From assembly GCA_964036045.1 (NCBI GenBank), contig OZ038379.1:4464001-4528000 (forward strand): DNA of 64,000 nt, in the 5' to 3' direction. Position 1 is the stretch's first letter; every line of letters starts with the position of its first letter. Of the stretch, positions 35,474 to 59,957 are shown one piece after another. The notes under the pieces were generated by a model. It was not told where the DNA came from and did not search any database. It saw only the letters and a program-made list of their open reading frames with translations. Origin of the DNA: Eutreptiella sp. 'Long Island Sound 2002' (Eukaryota; Protista; Euglenida). A program made the translations under genes and the position numbers.

Positions 35474-38020
35474 TACCTCCCAGCTGAGAGGACCATCTGC
35501 CTCCACAGGATGGCTCCAATTCACAGATCAGATGCAGTATGCACTTCGGCAGCACTAGTAGAAAAGAGGAATGCATGATCTGCGAATGAAAGAACTAGAA
35601 ATGTCATGTGCATACTGATATACATTGATTGCGATTAGCTGCGAATTTAACTAACTGATCCTTCACAATGTCACATGTCACACGAAGAGGTAAGTTTAGC
35701 CATCCAGATCTCTTTTATTCGAAATGAAAATCAGCTGCTGCCCCAAACAGTTTGAAATGCGCAACGGTGAGGCAGTAATGGCCAACCAAAATCACCCGGA
35801 CACTTTCACACATTTGTACTCCCTGCAGACGCGTGCCATTCCACAATGGAGCATGTGGGACATTGGAGGACCCACCCCTTCTCGGAGGGCTTGCCAGGCC
35901 CAAAATCTCTATTGCGGAGGGATTTTCCCCCTCACTGCTACAGTACATGGCTCACCATTTGGCTAATATGCACCCCCATCGTCGCCAAATGGTGACCCAA
36001 GCCTAACCCAAAGTGCGTGGGGGTGGTTAGGGATCGCTAGACAAAACAATTTTTTTTAGTGAACCCATGCCAACCTAAAAAAACGGCTAACACCTTGCCA
36101 GTGGGGGCCATGCTACTTTTGTTTTTTTTTTTTGCGGGGGCGGGGGCGGCCACTATACGTTGACCTCGGGAGAGCATTTGACACGGCACACGTGCGGCGC
36201 GGCTATTTGGCAACATGTATCAAAAAGGTGTTGTGTTTTTGTTCGGATTTGTCTTCTCGCACAGGGCACCTCTACAAATGTACTTTTTTGGGACCACAAC
36301 GGGCCAAGGGCCATTTCAAAGGTTATGAAAAGGGGGGGCCAATTGCATTGTGCTCTTGCTTGTGCTAAGCTTTTTGGGAAGGGGCGGTTTTATACGATTG
36401 TTGTGGCTCAAGTCTTTGTTCTCTGAGGGCCACTGAGGGAGGGGGATCAGGGATTAGGATGTTCCGGGAGTACACCGAGCAGGCCAACTGGATGTGGGAC
36501 CCCAAAAATCCCCCCTATTGATTGGCCACTCTACATAAGCCTGGTGGGCAGGGTGGAGGAGGCGAAGAGGAGGTGATAGGTGCACGAGACATCTTACACG
36601 GAGAACCGGAAGTGATGGATGAGGATGAAGAACCGCCCACACGCAACACCGCCTCTACAACACACATACACATGCACTCGCACACACCTGTACACGTGAC
36701 ACCATATGCAAGGGGGACACTATTGATGGATGTGGAGGCGTGCACCTAACAAGAGAGTCACCCCCCCCCCCCCCGTGTAGTGATTTGGAAGTGCTGCAGT
36801 GCAACAGAACAATCATGAGCTATGACGGGTCGCCTTGTGACACGGGGGCGTTTGGTAGCCGAGTATCCGTTGCTTCATGGCCCCACCCGGGTTTGTACCC
36901 GTGGCTGGCATGCATAGAAATATGCCCAAGTGGCCACCCCCCACCCGGGTGTCCTCTTCAGGGGACCGCCTCCTCAGAAGCGCCAAAGGGACAGTAAGAA
37001 GGCAGGGGGCGGTCCAACCATTGCGCTTTTCCATCTTCATGGGTCTCCTCACCCCCCATGCCTATACCCATCAACTGTGCACAGTCAAATGGAGGGTTTC
37101 CTCCACCAAACTTGAACGGGTGCACTACACCGGATTACTTTCCACCTTTATGGATCCCCCCCCCCCATGTACTTGACTATTCGGTTTCCTGTACGACAAC
37201 AGGTCCCCCCCCCCCTGCTCACCTCAGCTCATCACCGGTACGCTTTTGATGAGCGATGATCGTATACCTGTGTCTACGGAAGCTAAGTATCCGGTGCTTC
37301 ATTCCCCCCCCTGCTCACCACCGCCATGACTACGGCTAGGGAGCAGCACAGGGCTCCGAATGGGAATCGAAATATCGCCTCTGGTGCCTTTGGATAATAT
37401 CACACCCATGTTGTCACCATCTTTGGAGATCACACAGGACATGCAGGAGACAGCACGTGAACTGTTTCCTTCCCTGGGTTGGCCGGATCCAGAGGATCCC
37501 TCTGACGGACAGGACTCGGGATGCTGTTCTATCGAGTCGCCACAACCTGAGCCTGGGTTTGATATTGGGTTTGTGAAATCGTACTGAATCTGTTGTAGGC
37601 AACAATTGTGATGATGGATTTAGCACGAACATCAGCTCAATCAGAAAACGAAGATAATTGGACTTTTGCGTTTCAGCGCTGACAACGCACCTGACACACA
37701 CACCCTGCAAGCCCCAGCACCCCCTTGAGGACCGGAGGGTGGGCACAGCGAGCTGGCCGATGAAGTGCCACCGTCCTGTAAGCCTGCAGTGCCACCGGAC
37801 GGTCTACTCACCCCATGTACTGTACTGTGTAGGCTAAAGGTTTTGGCCGACAAAACACGGCTAAGTGAAGGAAGCAATTTGGTACTGTTTGCCAGATTGT
37901 ACATACACCGGCGCCCGATATGAAGGATCGCCGTGCAACAATCGAACTGCTGAACATTGCCGCATCTGCATGCCAAGAGTTGCATGCGTACAGCGCCTTG
38001 TTGACCTGCATGCGGCCCAA

Positions 38021-38030
38021 TGTTTCTTAG
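38021..38030 (+). promoter_or_regulatory. Putative (trans-)splice acceptor
   Basis: tgtttcttAG, 36 nt upstream of ATG 38067. Confidence 0.45.
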
Positions 38031-38066
38031 GGTCTACTTTGTCTCGTGTATGGCCCCTTCACCGCA

Positions 38067-40241
38067 ATGAAACGGCGCACCAGCAGCAGCGTGCTGCAGA
38101 CGACGGCGCAGCAGCCGCACCCCAAGGGCTCCACGGTCCTGCCAACCGCAGAGGCCGTGGCGTGGGTGCAGTGCGCGGACAGTCGCGCCAGCGCCATCGT
38201 GTGCGCGCAATGCGCGTGCTTCGTGGGCGGCACGCCGGCGCAGGTCGCCCTCGTGTCCGGGGCCGCGGCCGTGGCGGCGGAGGCCCTCGGTGGCGATGGC
38301 GGGGACTGGCGCGCGTGCCCACTGGGCTGCGGCGAAGTGTTCTGCAGCCAGGCCTGCTGCGACCAGGGCCTGCGCGGCGCGCACGGGCCCCTCTGCGTCG
38401 GGCCCCACACGGAGGAGCACCCGCTGTACCTCTTCCGCATCGCCGCCTTCGCGAGCGGGGCCTACGACGAGTGGCTGCTGGCGGCGAGGGTGGCCGTGCT
38501 GGTGGCGCAGGGGCAGTGCTGCGCGGTGTGGGAGGACGTGCCGCCGCTGTGGGACTTGGTGCCCCCGGATCTGGACCCGGAGGCCGCGGCCGCGTACCGC
38601 GCGGAGACCGAGCGGGTGGCGCGGGAGGCGTGGGCGTTGCTGGAGGCTGGACTGGGGCCGGGGTTCTGGGAGGACGCCGAGGAGCCGTGGGGCGCGGAGG
38701 ACTGGGGGCGGGTGCTGACGTACGTGCTGCGCGCGCGGGAGGCGGTGGAGCGCCGGACGCCCGCGGAGGTGCGGTGCGCGGGGGCGTACCTGTTGGGCGG
38801 TGCCGCGGCGCTGGGGGAGGCGGAGGAGGCAGAGGCCCTGCTGCGGTGCGCGCGGGTGCGTGACGAGGGGGAGGGGGAGGGGGAGGAGGAGGAGGAGGAG
38901 GAGGGGGAGGGGGCGGGGGAGGGGGAAGGGGGGGAAGACGACGGAAAAAGGGGGAAGGGTAGCACCGGCGGTGGAGGCAGCAGCAGCAGCAGCAGTTCGC
39001 GCGGCGCGGCCGGCGGTGACAGTGCGTGCGACCCGGCCCCCGACATCGGCCGCTGGACCTCCGAGCTCCCGGACGACGTAGCCCTCGCAAAGCTGTTCGC
39101 GACCCCCACGACGTACTTCCCCCGCTTCCGCGCCCTCGCGCTGTATCCCCCCGCCCTCGCGCAGCTGCCGCACAGCTGCGTGGCCTCGTGCGACATCACC
39201 GTGGCAGAGGAGGGCTGCAACCCGGGCCTCCGCGCCTCCCTCTTTGCCGCCCAGGCCCTGGCCCACGGCGACCCCCTCACCGTCTGCCGTGTGGACGTCT
39301 CCGCACCGTACGACGAGCGCCAGGACGAGCTCGCCATGCGCGGCCTGCCCCGCTGCGCATGCGACCGCTGCCGCTTCGAAGGCGGGGACGCGGCGGCGGT
39401 GGACGCGGCGGCGCTGCGGGCGCTCGCGGGCGCCGCGCAGCGCGGCGAGCGGCACGACGACGCCCTCGCGGCGCTGGAGGAGCTGCTGCGCCGCGACCCG
39501 GCGGACGGCGACGCGCTGTACGACCGCGCGCGCGTTTTGGGGTGGGCCGACCGCTGGTCGGAGGCGCATCGGCAGCTGGTGGCCGCCGGGAGGATCGTCC
39601 CTGACCACGCGGAAGTCGCGGCAAAGCTCCGCGAGGCGCGGGCCTACTTCTCCGGCCCCGGGGCCGGCCCCGGCGGCGCGGCGTGCGTTCCATCGGCGGT
39701 GCCGGGCCTCGGGGGCCGCGCGGTGGCCGCGGAGGGGCTGCTCGACCCGGCGGCGTGCGCCCGCCTCATCGCGGAGGTGGAGGAGGCCATGGCCGCGCAC
39801 GGGGGCTGGACGACCGCGCGGCACTACGCCGTGCCGACGACGGACGTGCCGGTGCACCGCGTGCCGGGGGCGCTGCGCTGGTTCAACGCCGTCCTGGAGC
39901 GCCACGCGTTCCCCCTGATCGCGCGGCAGTTCGCGGTGGCCGCCGCCGCGCTGCGCGTCATCGACGCGTTCGTGGTCAAGTACATGGCGTCCGGCGGCCA
40001 GCGCTCGCTGCCGCTGCACTGCGACCAGTCGCAGTTCTCGCTCACCATCGCACTGAACAGCACCGCGGAGTACGAGGGCGGGGGCACGTACTTTGCGGAC
40101 ATCGGGCGCGCCATCAACTGCGACGCCGGGGGGATCATCAGCTTCGACGGCAGCCTGTTGCATGGCGGCCACCCCTTGAGCTCCGGCACGCGATACATCG
40201 TCGTGGCCTTCATTTACGCCTACGACGGCCTGGACGAGTGA
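38067..40241 (+). CDS. 724-aa fusion: split MYND/degenerate SET (SMYD-like), post-SET, TPR-like region and 2OG-Fe(II) dioxygenase (lysyl-hydroxylase-like)
   Basis: CAQC (38202) and CPLGC-x-x-x-FCSQAC...HGPLC (38316-38396). LYPPALAQLPHSC (PHSC at 39168) and GDPLTVCR. CACDRC (39354). TPR-like helices ~39450-39630. FVVKY...QRSLPLHCD (His 40017, Asp 40023), LNSTAEYEGGGTYF, LLHGG (His 40161), TRY (Arg 40191). Very high GC3, intronless. Confidence 0.9.
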   Translation: MKRRTSSSVLQTTAQQPHPKGSTVLPTAEAVAWVQCADSRASAIVCAQCACFVGGTPAQVALVSGAAAVAAEALGGDGGDWRACPLGCGEVFCSQACCDQGLRGAHGPLCVGPHTEEHPLYLFRIAAFASGAYDEWLLAARVAVLVAQGQCCAVWEDVPPLWDLVPPDLDPEAAAAYRAETERVAREAWALLEAGLGPGFWEDAEEPWGAEDWGRVLTYVLRAREAVERRTPAEVRCAGAYLLGGAAALGEAEEAEALLRCARVRDEGEGEGEEEEEEEGEGAGEGEGGEDDGKRGKGSTGGGGSSSSSSSRGAAGGDSACDPAPDIGRWTSELPDDVALAKLFATPTTYFPRFRALALYPPALAQLPHSCVASCDITVAEEGCNPGLRASLFAAQALAHGDPLTVCRVDVSAPYDERQDELAMRGLPRCACDRCRFEGGDAAAVDAAALRALAGAAQRGERHDDALAALEELLRRDPADGDALYDRARVLGWADRWSEAHRQLVAAGRIVPDHAEVAAKLREARAYFSGPGAGPGGAACVPSAVPGLGGRAVAAEGLLDPAACARLIAEVEEAMAAHGGWTTARHYAVPTTDVPVHRVPGALRWFNAVLERHAFPLIARQFAVAAAALRVIDAFVVKYMASGGQRSLPLHCDQSQFSLTIALNSTAEYEGGGTYFADIGRAINCDAGGIISFDGSLLHGGHPLSSGTRYIVVAFIYAYDGLDE

Positions 40242-55000: not shown

Positions 55001-56106
55001 CAGAGCAAGGGTTAGAGACTAACCGGCACTGTGGGAGGGTGGTGGGTGCGAGCTGACCCAAATGTACAGATGGCCAAGGCCAAAGCACAATCAGCAGCCA
55101 CCTGGAGTGGTACAGAACTGGTCTGCGCTGCAGTGCAGCAAGGCAAAACACTGAACTGTGTGGTGATGACCATGCGCCTGTGACACGGGGGCGTATGCGA
55201 GCCCAGTATCCGTTGCCTCATGGCCCCTTGCGCAAGCACCGTCTTGTCTAAGCACGGTCTGACCGTCACTTTTACCGAATTTTCTGACCATGGCTTTTAC
55301 GGTCAGAAAGTTGGAAAGAGGGGAAGAGGGGCTGTTTCATGCTTGTGATGAGTCTTCCTGCTCATAACAACATTCTGCTTGGTGCTGCACCCCACTGCTC
55401 TTTGTTTCGGTGTGATTTTCACCCATGACTAATGTCGTTACCCCTGTCTTGGCTGTCACGTACATCCGTTCCACTGGTGAGCATGCGCCTGCCACTATCA
55501 TCGGTCGTTCTACTCGTGGGGAAGATTCCACAACCAAGGAATTACAACTTGGGAGCGCCCAGAGTTGCCCCCATACCCCACGGCCCCGTCAAAACCGCCC
55601 TGTTTTGACTATTGTGCTTAGGGTGAGGTATGGGTAGGTTTTCAGGACATGCTTTCTTTTGGTCCCATGCGTCGCGCGGTTGCACCGCCTTGTCTAAGCA
55701 CCAGGACCCGGTCTGACCGTCACTTTCCTGACCTAGCTGGTGCTTGCACAAGGGGGGGGGGGGTACTTTTGTTGAGGCCTCATTTTGTAGGAGTTGTTGA
55801 TTATCGATCATTGACTAACGGTGAGTGAGGCCTGTCCGGTTTTGTGGAGGCATTTCTTGCCCCAAACCCTTGACCACCCTCCACAACCATCCACAATAGC
55901 CAATTTCATGGCATCAAACCCCAAACACATTTTTGAATTACGGCACTATGTCACCACTACTTTGCGGCCGAAGATCTAAGAATGGTAATGCAACAATTCT
56001 GAAAGATCTGAGGAGGGCACATGAGGTTAATGCGTAGGCGTGGTCCGGACCTGGCCTGGGTCATGTAGCTGCTGCGTTCACCTTGTCACCGACGTTACAT
56101 ACCAGA

Positions 56107-56123
56107 TTTGTTTCTTCTGCCAG
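56107..56123 (+). promoter_or_regulatory. Putative (trans-)splice acceptor inside the old transit-peptide coding region
   Basis: tttgtttcttctgccAG, 28 nt upstream of ATG 56152. Confidence 0.45.
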
Positions 56124-56151
56124 TACTCCCACCACCTGCAAAGCATCGACC

Positions 56152-58014
56152 ATGGCTCCAACAATTGATACTGCATCGCTGCCACGTTGGGACCTCAGCA
56201 AGTTCGGCTTCTCTTCTCCCTTCTCGGAGGATATCGACAGTCACCTGGCTGAGACTCGCAAGCTGGCCGAGGCCTTCAAGGCCAAGTATGAAGGGAAATT
56301 GTCGGAGCTCTCGCTCCTCTCGGCCATCGAGGAGTATGAGCAGATCTCCATCCGACGCACCTTGGTGTCGTCTTATCTGCACCTGTCATACGATACTGCC
56401 CTTGAGGACGATGACTTAAAGAAGCGCAAAGGCGCCCTCAGTCAGACTCAGAGTGAGATTTATGGCGATAACCTCGAATGGTTCAGCCTTGACGTTGCCG
56501 AGCTTGACGACGCCGACCTTACCAAGCAGTATGGGGCGGAGCCCAATCTGTCAAAGTACAAGTCGTTCATTGATGAGCTTCGCAGGCAGAAGCCTCATAA
56601 CCTGTCGAAAGATGTTGAGCGCGCTCTCACGGTACGTGCCCCCTACGCTGGAACCCGTCCTCTAGTCAGCTTTTTCGACAAGGAACTCTCGCTCATGCGT
56701 TTCAAGATCGACGGTGAGGATGGCGATGAAGTGAACATGGAAGTGCTGTTGTCTCGCATGTCATCGTCCTCGGATGCTGCCTTCCGTGCCAAATGCTTGA
56801 AGGCTCTCAACGACAGCTTGGCCGGATCGGTATCGCGCACGGCTGCTCTTAGTCTTTCCGCCGTCTCGGGCTCATGGCTCATCGAGAACAAAGAGCGCAA
56901 GTACGTCAATCTTCGCTCTCGCCGTAACCTCGACAACAATTGTCCTGATGAGGTGGTTGACAGCCTTCTCGATGCCGTCCGAAAGGCCGGCCTCCCGCTC
57001 TGTAAGAGATACTATGGTCTCAAGAAGGCCATACTGCAAAAGACGCAGGGCCTCGAGAAGCTCAAGTGGAGCGACAGAAACGCCCCGATCGACATCGGAG
57101 GCTCTACGTCCGACAAAATTTCGTGGGAAGATGCGGTGGCCATGGTCGAGAAGGGTTATCACAAGTTCTCGCCGAAGATGGCAGATCTGTTCAAGAGTAT
57201 GGTGGATGAGAAGCGAATCGATGTGCCCGCTACCAACGGCAAGAAGGGCGGTGCCTACTGTGCCGGTGCAGTGCCCGGTGTTGGTCCCTTCCAGCTCCTC
57301 AACTTTGATGGAACCAAGCAAGATGTTGCGACACTGGCTCACGAAAGTGGCCATGGGTGCCACGACATTCTTGCCTACAGCCAGGGATATCTGCAGTACC
57401 ATCCTCCCCTAACACTTGCTGAAACCGCCAGCATCTTTGGCGAGATGATTGTCTTTCGTGATCTTCTCAGCCAAAGTTCCAGCAAGGAAGAGGAACTGAC
57501 GCTCTTGATGAGTAAAACGGATGACATTCTGAACTCGGTCGTCAGGCAGTGCTCCTTCGACCGCTTCGAGGAGCTGGTGCATACAGCTAGGGAGAAAGGC
57601 GAGCTCAGTGCCGATGAGATGGTTAAATACTGGATGCAAGCTTTGCGTGAATATTATGGAACGGAGGCTGACGATGGAGGAGACTCTCCTTTTGATTCCT
57701 ACGATGACGCCTCGCATCTGTGGAGTTATGTGCCTCACTTTCATCACGTCCCGTTCTATGTGTACTCGTATGCTTTTGCGGACCTCGTCGTTGGTACATT
57801 GTACAATAACTACGTTCAGAACCGTGAGGGATTCGAGGGCAGGCTCATTGACTTGCTCTCCGCTGGTGGAACCAAGGACTTTGCCGATGCTCTTGCGCCA
57901 TTCGGCCTCGACCCAACTTCTCCTACTTTCTGGATTGATGCCCTCAATGCTCATCTCGGTGAGCTAGTGAACGAAGCCGAGAAGGTTGCCAAAGAGCTTG
58001 GGTACGTTCAGTGA
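56152..58014 (+). CDS. pepF: Oligoendopeptidase F (peptidase M3B), 620 aa from the first ATG
   Basis: N-terminal LPRWDLS, GKKGGAYC, zinc motif TLAHESGH (57340-57354), third ligand in LAETASIFGE (Glu 57421), and WSYVPHF...FYVYSYAF. Intact and intronless. Confidence 0.93.
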   Translation: MAPTIDTASLPRWDLSKFGFSSPFSEDIDSHLAETRKLAEAFKAKYEGKLSELSLLSAIEEYEQISIRRTLVSSYLHLSYDTALEDDDLKKRKGALSQTQSEIYGDNLEWFSLDVAELDDADLTKQYGAEPNLSKYKSFIDELRRQKPHNLSKDVERALTVRAPYAGTRPLVSFFDKELSLMRFKIDGEDGDEVNMEVLLSRMSSSSDAAFRAKCLKALNDSLAGSVSRTAALSLSAVSGSWLIENKERKYVNLRSRRNLDNNCPDEVVDSLLDAVRKAGLPLCKRYYGLKKAILQKTQGLEKLKWSDRNAPIDIGGSTSDKISWEDAVAMVEKGYHKFSPKMADLFKSMVDEKRIDVPATNGKKGGAYCAGAVPGVGPFQLLNFDGTKQDVATLAHESGHGCHDILAYSQGYLQYHPPLTLAETASIFGEMIVFRDLLSQSSSKEEELTLLMSKTDDILNSVVRQCSFDRFEELVHTAREKGELSADEMVKYWMQALREYYGTEADDGGDSPFDSYDDASHLWSYVPHFHHVPFYVYSYAFADLVVGTLYNNYVQNREGFEGRLIDLLSAGGTKDFADALAPFGLDPTSPTFWIDALNAHLGELVNEAEKVAKELGYVQ

Positions 58015-58435
58015 GATATTGAGTACAGGTAGAGTGATAGATTTGAGAAGCGCATGAATCTAAGAGACCTAAGCATTACCACTAGTAGCCGCAGACATCT
58101 TCTGTGCTCTTTTCCTGGCCTTCTTCTTTTCTCTCGCGGCCAAAGACCCGACAAATGTGGTGAGGAATCTATACAGCCCTTCGAATCCTTCATCCCTTAA
58201 GTAATTAAGACATTTGACCTTACCTATTACCCCATATCTCGCAGGAACCTTCGTTCCATCCGTTTTTTTTGATTTTCAGCTCAGCATGATCTTTTATGGA
58301 ATGCCATCATGGCGTCGCAGTTGCATCCCAATGCATCCGCTAGTGACAGATTTCAGGTTCAAATATACATCCCGCCGTCGTTGACGGCCCGTGGAGTCTC
58401 CGCATGGGATAATATATGTTGTACTTCACCTACTA

Positions 58436-59500
58436 CACAGAACCGGCCCATCTGGCTGAGCACTTACGAGGCACACGTAAGTCGGAGCGAAAAACTTGAC
58501 CTTCAGGGAACCTGAGCAGATCCGCAGATAATGATTCAGGACCATCGTTGGCACTGCGCTGGCGTTTCTTCTTCAAATACTTGTCAAGAAAGTGGGAAGC
58601 ATAACCAGCAAAGACAGCTCTGTGAGTGATGGAAAGCGCAGCTGCCACCTTTACAGTCAGATGGCAAATGATGCAGGGCCAACGATGTCTCCCGAGGAAT
58701 GTCTGTGAACAGAATTGAATTCATTCTCGCCATGCCATCAGCTTGTCCCCCATCCAGAAAAGAAAGCGGAGAGCATTTCGATAGGACTGACTGGAAACAA
58801 AGCAATTGAAGATGACGACTCTTTCCAGCCCACTTATTTCCCCGTTTTTATCCGGCTGCATACGCTTGGTGTGCTCTTTGCTTTCATCTGTTTGAATACG
58901 CCCTGGTATCTGGGAAGTGACGCACAAACATGATTGGTACACAAAGCGATGCTGGACGGGAAAATCCGATAAATGAGGAACGAACTTGGCGCTGCTACAA
59001 AGTTGCATTCATCACAAATACCGCAAACGGCATCGTAGAAGTCCAAGGCCGATAGACACACTAACTCGTGACCACTTCCATCAGAGCCTCCTTCCGACAT
59101 CAGCCCACCAAGTAAGAGATTGCCACACCCATTGGATGAGCTCTTGGATAGCCCTCTGCTTGTACTCTGTTGCACTCACACAATTTGCTCCTGATCTATT
59201 CCTATTTGATTTTGGTTTGTCCCACTCAAGTCGCCACCATCGCTGAATTGGCAGCGCCAGTAACCCGGATACAATGGTAAACTTAATCCTTGGCCAGATA
59301 GTCCAGAACACGCCTCTTGAAATCGCCGAAGCCCAAAGCCTTTTGCAATGGAAGAAGATCGTTGCAGATTGTCCTTCCAAGCTTGTCAATGCCATCCCAT
59401 AGCGGTAGTACTTCATCTGGTGGCAGTGTATCCGTATGTCTGGCCAGAGAGGCTGACACTCGAAGGACACGAAACTTTCAACAGGTGATTTTAGACATAT
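58436..59500 (-). pseudogene. Probable decayed protein-coding gene of unknown function, convergent with pepF
   Basis: Protein-like stretches in alternating minus frames (LPPDEVLPLWDGIDKLGRTICNDLLPLQKALGFGDFKRRVLDYLAKD*VYHCIRV; ELVCLSALDFYDAVCG; YRNALRFLFWMGDKLM; YASHFLDKYLKKK), broken by stops and frameshifts. No homopolymer G-runs. Confidence 0.45.
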
Positions 59501-59957
59501 GCGGAAAGAGCCGCCTAAGACCAAGGTCGAGCCCGTAGTTTCCGTGCGTGCACGTGTGTGGGTAATGGGGGGGAGGGAGGGACCCTGTGTGTGGGTGGCC
59601 AGTGTGGCCTAATGCTCCAGCCGCGGTGGGGAGGCCCAAGAGCTGGACACTGAGCGCACCGGGGAGTCTTGGGCCAAGGCATCGCAGTCCTCCAAGTCAC
59701 AGAGACATGCTGCCTGAACATCCTCGATTGCAATTGCACGGGGGCAGCTGTGCGCAGGGCACAAGAAGGTGGATCCACGCTCCGACTGCCAAACAGCACA
59801 AGTGGCATTGCTTTGCTTTGCAAGCCGGGTTCCGACCCAGGTGACACACCTGCAAGGCTGGTTCGTGAACAGAACCATGTTGAAACAGGGGCCAACCCTC
59901 CAACAACTGCGTGTAAGCTGCCGGTGGTCAACAAACAGGCACTTGAAGGAGGGCAGC

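Follow-up and report, generated by a model that had tools for sequence, protein, structure and literature searches.

The window analyzed here is a 64,000-nucleotide stretch of the euglenid Eutreptiella sp. 'Long Island Sound 2002' (assembly GCA_964036045.1, contig OZ038379.1, positions 4,464,001 to 4,528,000). It carries a pepF-like gene for an oligoendopeptidase of the M3B family that appears to have come from a diatom. We interpret the gene and the DNA that follows it, a segment of at least 3.4 kb (approximately 56038-59487 of the window), as contiguous nuclear DNA from a Thalassiosirales-type diatom. According to this reading, the segment integrated into a euglenid chromosome, the peptidase gene was kept and is expressed by means of the host spliced leader (SL), and the neighboring gene decayed. 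We put the probability of this reading at about 85%. Our analysis shows the diatom origin of the gene, the homology of a relic presequence upstream of its ATG, the conservation of gene order, the SL junction, the extent of the RNA, and the occurrence of an intact gene beside a broken one. We refer to the segment as the island, and its features are listed in Table 1.

The peptidase gene and its diatom affinity

The product of the gene is predicted to be an M3B oligoendopeptidase. The protein matches PF01432 (2e-40, 140 bits against a Pfam gathering cut-off of 27) and PF08439 (3e-09, 37.4 bits against a cut-off of 25), and the closest solved structure is PepF 2qr4 (E=1.6e-40, residues 33-613). 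The zinc motif HESGH occupies residues 397-401, and the motif containing the third-ligand Glu (ETASIFGE) begins at residue 424. These zinc-site motifs are the same in the diatom homologues. The protein also matches TIGR02290 over profile positions 1-575 (9.5e-131), with a score of 437.6 that lies below the curated NCBIfam cut-off of 561.7. For TIGR00181, the score of 252.4 is below the cut-off of 490.55. The window peptidase is thus best described as a relative, and not an equivalog, of these bacterial subfamilies. It shares a full-length match, both Pfam domains, and a HEXXH-plus-Glu zinc site with bacterial oligoendopeptidase F (PDB 2qr4 and 3ce2; TIGR02290, TIGR00181), but it falls in a eukaryotic branch and does not reach the TIGR02290 cut-off. 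The diatom versions further differ from the bacterial enzyme in bearing N-terminal leaders.

A genome search indicated that pepF is single-copy in the host. The sole other M3 match in the genome is on a small contig (C1543:14157-14981), where a 615-aa open frame shows 26% identity. This match may be to an M3 peptidase of the host, or its contig may be a bacterial contaminant.

We examined the phylogenetic position of the window protein. Metagenome proteins are up to 87% identical to it, followed by those of Thalassiosira minuscula (85%), Skeletonema species (83-84%), Cyclotella cryptica (82%), pennate diatoms (67-72%), and green algae (approximately 58%). An IQ-TREE analysis of 46 sequences (support given as UFBoot/SH-aLRT, the ultrafast bootstrap and the SH-like approximate likelihood ratio test) placed the protein in a Thalassiosirales-type clade of 14 rows (98/91). 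This clade lies within a 15-row clade (100/99), which in turn lies within the diatom clade (100/99). A quick tree of 85 sequences agreed with the nesting among diatoms. The terminal branch of the window protein is short (0.089) and similar to the branches of diatoms. Placement outside all diatom-type rows was rejected by the approximately unbiased (AU) test (log-likelihood difference 39.7, p=0.008). A preliminary description of this DNA had proposed a diatom or other ochrophyte origin and suggested phylogeny as a check. The trees bear out that proposal, and they indicate that the gene probably originated from a group within the diatoms, of Thalassiosirales type.

No other euglenid-like sequence branched with the window protein among the best 120 hits. 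The transcriptome of the diplonemid Lacrimia lanifica (EukProt; P0021/P0121) contains a pepF that is placed among diatoms and is 76% identical to the window protein. One of its isoforms has its own 30-residue N-terminal extension. The Lacrimia sequence may come from contaminating diatom material, or the gene may have been transferred separately into this other euglenozoan.

Diatom-like genes in a euglenid could also have an older source. Red-lineage genes are already known from euglenids (Maruyama et al. 2011, PMC3101172), and 22 ochrophyte-affiliated proteins were reported in the plastid proteome of Euglena gracilis (bioRxiv 10.1101/573709). The synonymous sites of the window gene are saturated, so the event was not recent. 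On that view, the gene would go back to an ancient red-lineage endosymbiont or to old ochrophyte-wide transfers into euglenophytes, and not to a single transfer from within the diatoms. The position of the protein argues against such a source, since it lies deep inside the diatoms, beside one order-level group and on a short branch. The lineage-specific presequence features and the two-gene arrangement described below, which is found in only some of those diatoms, argue against it as well. We consider an ancient red-lineage origin to be quite improbable.

A relic of the donor presequence upstream of the ATG

Diatom homologues of the window protein carry a leader of 48-58 residues before a conserved Met, as seen in two transcripts (L006 and L007) and five genomic loci (L016, L017, L018, L035, and L036). 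The leader opens with basic residues and continues with a hydrophobic segment (LSLIVASAS or LSLFVASSS). A stretch that is free of acidic residues and abounds in Ser, Thr, Ala, and Pro follows, and the motif T-x-C-x-A-x-T comes just before the Met. The acid-free stretch holds R-P, then A-A-F, then S-P, and the AAF/AAL motif is conserved in Thalassiosirales-type leaders. Kyte-Doolittle hydropathy in the hydrophobic 10-residue window is 1.8-2.2 for Thalassiosirales-type leaders and up to 3.1 for some other or pennate diatom-type sequences.

Bipartite presequences that target diatom proteins to the plastid contain an ASAFAP motif, known from ASAFind and the work of Kilian and Kroth. The leaders of the donor homologues resemble these presequences in that a hydrophobic segment is followed by an acid-free Ser/Thr/Ala/Pro stretch with an AAF-type motif. 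They differ in that the AAF lies 15-20 residues beyond the hydrophobic segment and not at its end. Leader starts such as MLRFF and MPRLAR also fit a mitochondrial or dual signal, and our literature search found nothing on the localization of the diatom enzyme. The plastid-targeting role that the preliminary description gave to the presequence is a candidate role. In every diatom copy examined (P0009-P0015, L006, L007, L016, L035, and L036), a Met is positioned exactly at the start of the mature domain. This conserved Met could permit a second, leaderless isoform to be made by alternative initiation in diatoms.

The window retains the second half of this leader as untranslated DNA. The preliminary description had noted an in-frame TAG (56035-56037), a Met-less open frame from 56038 to the ATG at 56152, an AAAF at 56068-56079, an AG at 56122-56123, and the end of the open reading frame (ORF) at 58014, and all of these coordinates are exact. 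An open frame of 38 codons is unremarkable per se, since random windows of that length in the non-coding flanks are open in 19% of cases. Ordinary non-coding DNA could by chance be open here and have a high content of Ser, Thr, and Ala; the gene may still be foreign in that case, but no presequence would be left. Pairwise scores against Skeletonema presequences, which were not significant under strict gap penalties, fit that possibility.

Other comparisons argue against a chance frame. The translated frame aligns with the second half of the diatom leader, and the diatom homologues bear the same layout (P..AAF..SP..TxCxAxT-M) with the columns P, A, F, P, T/S, C, A, and M in common. Aligned with the 5'-truncated diatom transcript L005, the relic gave a gapless match of 28 residues with 14 identities and a score of 62. 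Composition-preserving shuffles scored 25.4 +/- 4.9 in the same comparison, and none of 2000 reached the score of the relic. We also built a profile from the presequence tails of eight diatoms, with the window left out. The relic scored 9.5 bits on this profile and the shuffles -1.9 +/- 2.8 (3 of 2000 reached the relic score), and the other five reading frames remained at background (-1.6 to -2.9). At the DNA level, the relic and L005 are identical at 47 of 84 nt. The identities fall on codon positions 1, 2, and 3 in the proportions 17, 19, and 11 of 28, which is a coding-type pattern, and the AAAF codons match at all 12 of their 12 nt. We conclude that a chance origin of the frame is very improbable and that these 38 codons are, as judged from the alignments, homologous to the donor presequence.

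The preliminary description had also suggested that the front of the signal peptide was lost. We looked upstream of 56038 in all three frames and found no signal-peptide-like or hydrophobic front, so that the beginning of the leader, including its Met, has been lost as suggested. A DNA comparison with the metagenome contig L016 gave no match upstream of 56305, and hence none in or before the relic.

Trans-splicing within the relic

The 5' end of the peptidase transcripts has no template at the locus. In three samples, transcript contigs (L002-L004) encode a protein identical to that of the window. They start with T(3-8)CG and continue collinearly with the window, free of mismatches, from 56106 to 58833-58848. 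A contig from RNA run X1 has the loose end TTTTTTTC before 56105, and the motif TTTTTTTCGGT is absent from the window. The T-run and CG represent the 3' end of the SL and are not encoded in the window. The one genomic SL-RNA gene that we read directly shows a T run, CG, and then a GT donor. The SL-RNA motif has 5072 matches in the genome, and a control pattern has 149. The RNA contigs stop at 58838-58842, and none of them covers 55800-56104 or extends past 58848. These SL-bearing transcripts, which are 100% identical to the window, come from metatranscriptomes labelled 'estuary metagenome' (L002-L004; runs X1, X2, X4, and X6). This source is odd unless the samples contained a euglenid of this strain or one had been added to them.

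Two routes to expression had been proposed in the preliminary description: splicing inside the old transit peptide with retargeting of the protein, or fusion to a host leader exon further upstream. The first was right in kind, as SL trans-splicing does occur within the presequence relic, but the site is an AG 18 nt upstream of the one proposed (56122-56123). The second finds no support, as there is no RNA upstream of 56105. The idea of retargeting did not hold up either. With the SL joined at 56106 and no ATG in the 5' untranslated region (UTR), translation must start at 56152, and this codon corresponds to the conserved Met with which the mature domain begins in each of the diatom sequences examined. 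Trans-splicing now discards one half of the relic as outron and leaves the other half as 5' UTR. Since the protein starts at the mature Met without any leader, the window enzyme is probably cytosolic.

We considered a cis-spliced upstream exon and rejected it. An in-frame ATG at 55948 (MSPLL...) opens a 29-codon frame closed by the TAG at 56035, and its translation is unlike any diatom leader. Pairing the GT at 55985 with the AG at 56036-56037 would define a 53-nt intron that is out of frame, in a region without RNA.

A decayed neighbor in donor gene order

The DNA downstream of the peptidase gene resembles the gene that follows pepF in certain diatoms. In the metagenome contig L016, a gene for a 964-aa protein lies directly after pepF in convergent orientation. 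The window contains a collinear remnant of this gene, with amino acid identities of 48-80% in pieces and DNA identities of 67-74%. A weak match may carry the remnant on to approximately 59609. The intergenic spacing between pepF and the neighbor is 64 nt in the window versus 96 nt in L016. The minus strand of 58078-59487 is thus a frameshifted pseudogene of the convergent diatom neighbor of pepF. A protein search with the 964-aa neighbor matched only metagenome proteins, all of them about equally close to the remnant, and the comparison with Pfam gave a sub-threshold hint of CENP-I/Mis6 (E=0.016).

The order Mod_r, neighbor, and convergent pepF recurs in three diatom-type metagenome lineages (L016/L025, L035, and L036). 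We did not see it in Skeletonema marinoi, where an LSM gene comes after pepF, in Cyclotella cryptica, or in the P0122 lineage, where TIC20 comes after. The presence of pepF and its convergent neighbor in donor order indicates that the block arrived as one piece.

Integration in the host chromosome

The host assembly comprises 2.28 Gb in 2317 contigs, and the window begins 4.46 Mb into its contig (C2). The island is physically integrated in the euglenid chromosome. Contigs from a DNA run cover 55800-58427 and 58459-59600 with zero differences and bridge both borders of the island. DNA depth across the island is approximately 45x and even with the flanks, and a separately deposited 440-kb contig contains the identical sequence. 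Compared to L016, the window holds approximately 286 extra nt at 58222-58507, in which a dispersed host repeat is found. At least 815 candidate copies of this repeat, with 75-85% identity, occur on many contigs, and DNA depth at the repeat rises from 45 to as much as 2168. The repeat is approximately 265 nt long and in other copies is followed by an A-rich stretch; here, it is transcribed within the 3' UTR of pepF.

The high amino acid identity to diatoms and the compact, diatom-like gene spacing could be taken as signs of a diatom contaminant or a chimeric misassembly. Several of our results speak against this explanation. The borders are bridged at a depth equal to that of the flanks, a host repeat family lies within the island, the same sequence was deposited separately, and the transcripts bear a euglenid SL whose sequence the locus lacks. 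The neighbor is a pseudogene, which would be unexpected in a live diatom contaminant, and synonymous sites are saturated relative to every diatom sampled. We regard contamination as extremely unlikely. Of the three outcomes that the preliminary description had named as refuting its proposal (a protein grouping away from ochrophytes, algal homologues without a similar presequence, or a misassembled contaminant), none was observed.

We searched the island borders for a poly(A) tract, a target-site duplication, and terminal repeats and found none. Direct repeat pairs flank the island at 50018-50249/54995-55227 (91%) and 59958-60211/60662-60915 (99.6%), so that it is embedded in repeat-rich host DNA. 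Elsewhere in the window, a 2-kb stretch (38001-40000) has a G+C content of 76%, compared to a window mean of approximately 51%.

Selection on the peptidase and age of the transfer

The 1860-nt ORF of the peptidase is unbroken and retains both the HEXXH and the Glu that follows it, whereas at least four frame changes are present in the 1.2 kb of co-transferred sequence next to it. With this decayed neighbor as an internal control, the intact ORF points to purifying selection on the peptidase. For codon statistics, we joined the two exons of the L016 pepF. Nonsynonymous divergence (dN) is approximately 0.13, and third codon positions are 39-46% identical to any diatom copy. The Nei-Gojobori method gave no value for synonymous divergence (dS), the synonymous sites being saturated. 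Saturation of third positions suggests an old event, of about the same age as the divergence among the Thalassiosirales genera sampled.

Table 1. Features of the diatom-derived island, in window coordinates
Feature	Position	Strand	Remarks
In-frame TAG	56035-56037	+	Closes the frame; homology to diatom presequences stops about here
Relic of donor N-terminal presequence	56038-56151	+	38 codons, no Met, hydrophobic front missing; aligned with eight diatom presequences
AG acceptor for SL trans-splicing	56104-56105	+	3' end of SL joined at 56106
5' UTR	56106-56151	+	46 nt, no ATG; last 15 relic codons
Predicted pepF-like M3B oligoendopeptidase, coding sequence	56152-58014	+	Intact, intronless, 620 aa; ends at 58014
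Predicted zinc site	57340-57444	+	HESGH 57340-57354; downstream Glu motif ETASIFGE 57421-57444
3' UTR	58015-58848	+	About 834 nt; antisense through part of the neighbor remnant and through the host repeat
Neighbor remnant, C-terminal piece	58078-58221	-	About residues 914-961; 71-77% aa identity to the 964-aa protein beside pepF in L016
Dispersed host repeat inside the island	58229-58494		Absent from diatom loci
Neighbor pseudogene, main body	58514-59487	-	About residues 576-909 of 964; three reading frames; N-terminal 575 residues absent

Discussion

We propose the following model for the history of the island. The transferred block would have comprised a pepF-like gene for an M3B oligoendopeptidase, truncated at its 5' end, together with the 3' 40% of the neighbor convergent to it. 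From its N-terminal targeting presequence, the peptidase gene would have lost the Met as well as the hydrophobic front, and the remaining 38 presequence codons would persist as DNA that is not translated. Addition of the host SL at the AG inside the relic would yield a capped mRNA with a 46-nt 5' UTR, and the first AUG of this mRNA would be the Met that opens the mature domain in every diatom homologue listed. The neighbor fragment would have decayed by frameshifts and by insertion of the host repeat. Purifying selection would maintain the enzyme, made leaderless and presumably cytosolic, in a likely role as a zinc oligopeptidase for the trimming of short peptides.

Several points weigh against this model or limit it. 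Placement of the protein just outside the 15-row clade was not rejected (AU p=0.09), and its position inside the Thalassiosirales-type group is a trichotomy. The clades compared in the AU tests were defined with the tree already in hand. Most relatives of the window protein, including the syntenic ones, are metagenome contigs that we take as diatoms from where they fall in the tree, their presequence, and their gene density. The evidence for the SL junction consists of assembled contigs, some of which perhaps derive from the same samples. Finally, the window gene has no intron near residue 50, where every mapped diatom genomic locus has one, so that a plain transfer of genomic DNA requires either a later, precise loss of the intron or an intronless donor. 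Three routes to its absence are possible: precise loss after transfer, an intronless donor, or the complementary DNA (cDNA) of a read-through transcript.

The last of these routes implies transfer through RNA. The island would then be a reverse-transcribed, 5'-truncated copy of a spliced read-through transcript of the diatom pepF gene, with a long 3' end running antisense through the neighbor. Absence of the conserved intron and of the 5' end are both typical of retrocopies, and retroelement-like genes are present in the host region. However, the approximately 1.4 kb of antisense neighbor demands an unusually long read-through transcript, and the 3' border shows no poly(A) tract or target-site duplication. 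The neighbor itself cannot discriminate between the two routes, since its L016 counterpart has no called introns. We consider RNA-mediated transfer unlikely, though worth keeping in mind, and favor the transfer of a contiguous piece of diatom DNA.

Gene transfer from other eukaryotes into euglenids has been described before. In addition to the red-lineage genes and plastid proteins mentioned above, a passage in Maruyama et al. that cites Tripodi et al. describes an affinity between the delta-4 desaturases of Euglena and Thalassiosira (PMC3101172). Like the earlier cases (PMC3101172; 10.1101/573709), the window locus is a nuclear euglenid gene whose nearest relatives are in chlorophyll-c algae. 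The earlier cases came from single-gene trees based on expressed sequence tags or proteomes, whereas the window locus adds a donor within the diatoms and a genomic footprint. Our literature search found no paper on this peptidase in Euglena.

Multi-gene genomic fragments have reportedly moved between eukaryotes in grass-to-grass transfers involving Alloteropsis. Those transfers are said to resemble the window locus in that a multi-gene donor block arrived, one gene was kept and expressed, and others degenerated. The window locus differs in that its donor and recipient belong to different eukaryotic supergroups and in that expression depends on SL trans-splicing. Thus, the kind of event is already known, and what is new is the quality of the footprint: a donor within the diatoms, two genes in donor order, a leader fossil, and an SL acceptor inside that fossil. 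We see about even odds that this is the first physically documented block of a diatom chromosome in a euglenid genome with two genes in donor order. The same even odds extend to the route of domestication that it would illustrate. An SL acceptor inside the donor's targeting codons would give the gene a 5' end without a dedicated promoter, strip the targeting signal, and move the enzyme from an organellar or secretory route to the cytosol by way of a mature-domain Met that diatoms already conserve.

Claims of transfer between eukaryotes usually derive from single-gene trees and are often disputed as contamination or tree artefacts. The window locus unites independent footprints, namely a nested phylogeny, a fossil of a targeting peptide, a decayed neighbor that serves as a neutral control, a later host repeat, and host-specific mRNA processing. 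It narrows the donor of one euglenid 'red-lineage' gene to a group within the diatoms. It also offers a testable example of how SL trans-splicing can switch on a promoterless foreign gene and alter the location of its product. The pairing of an intact and a decayed gene may be used to date the event and to find similar islands across the genome.

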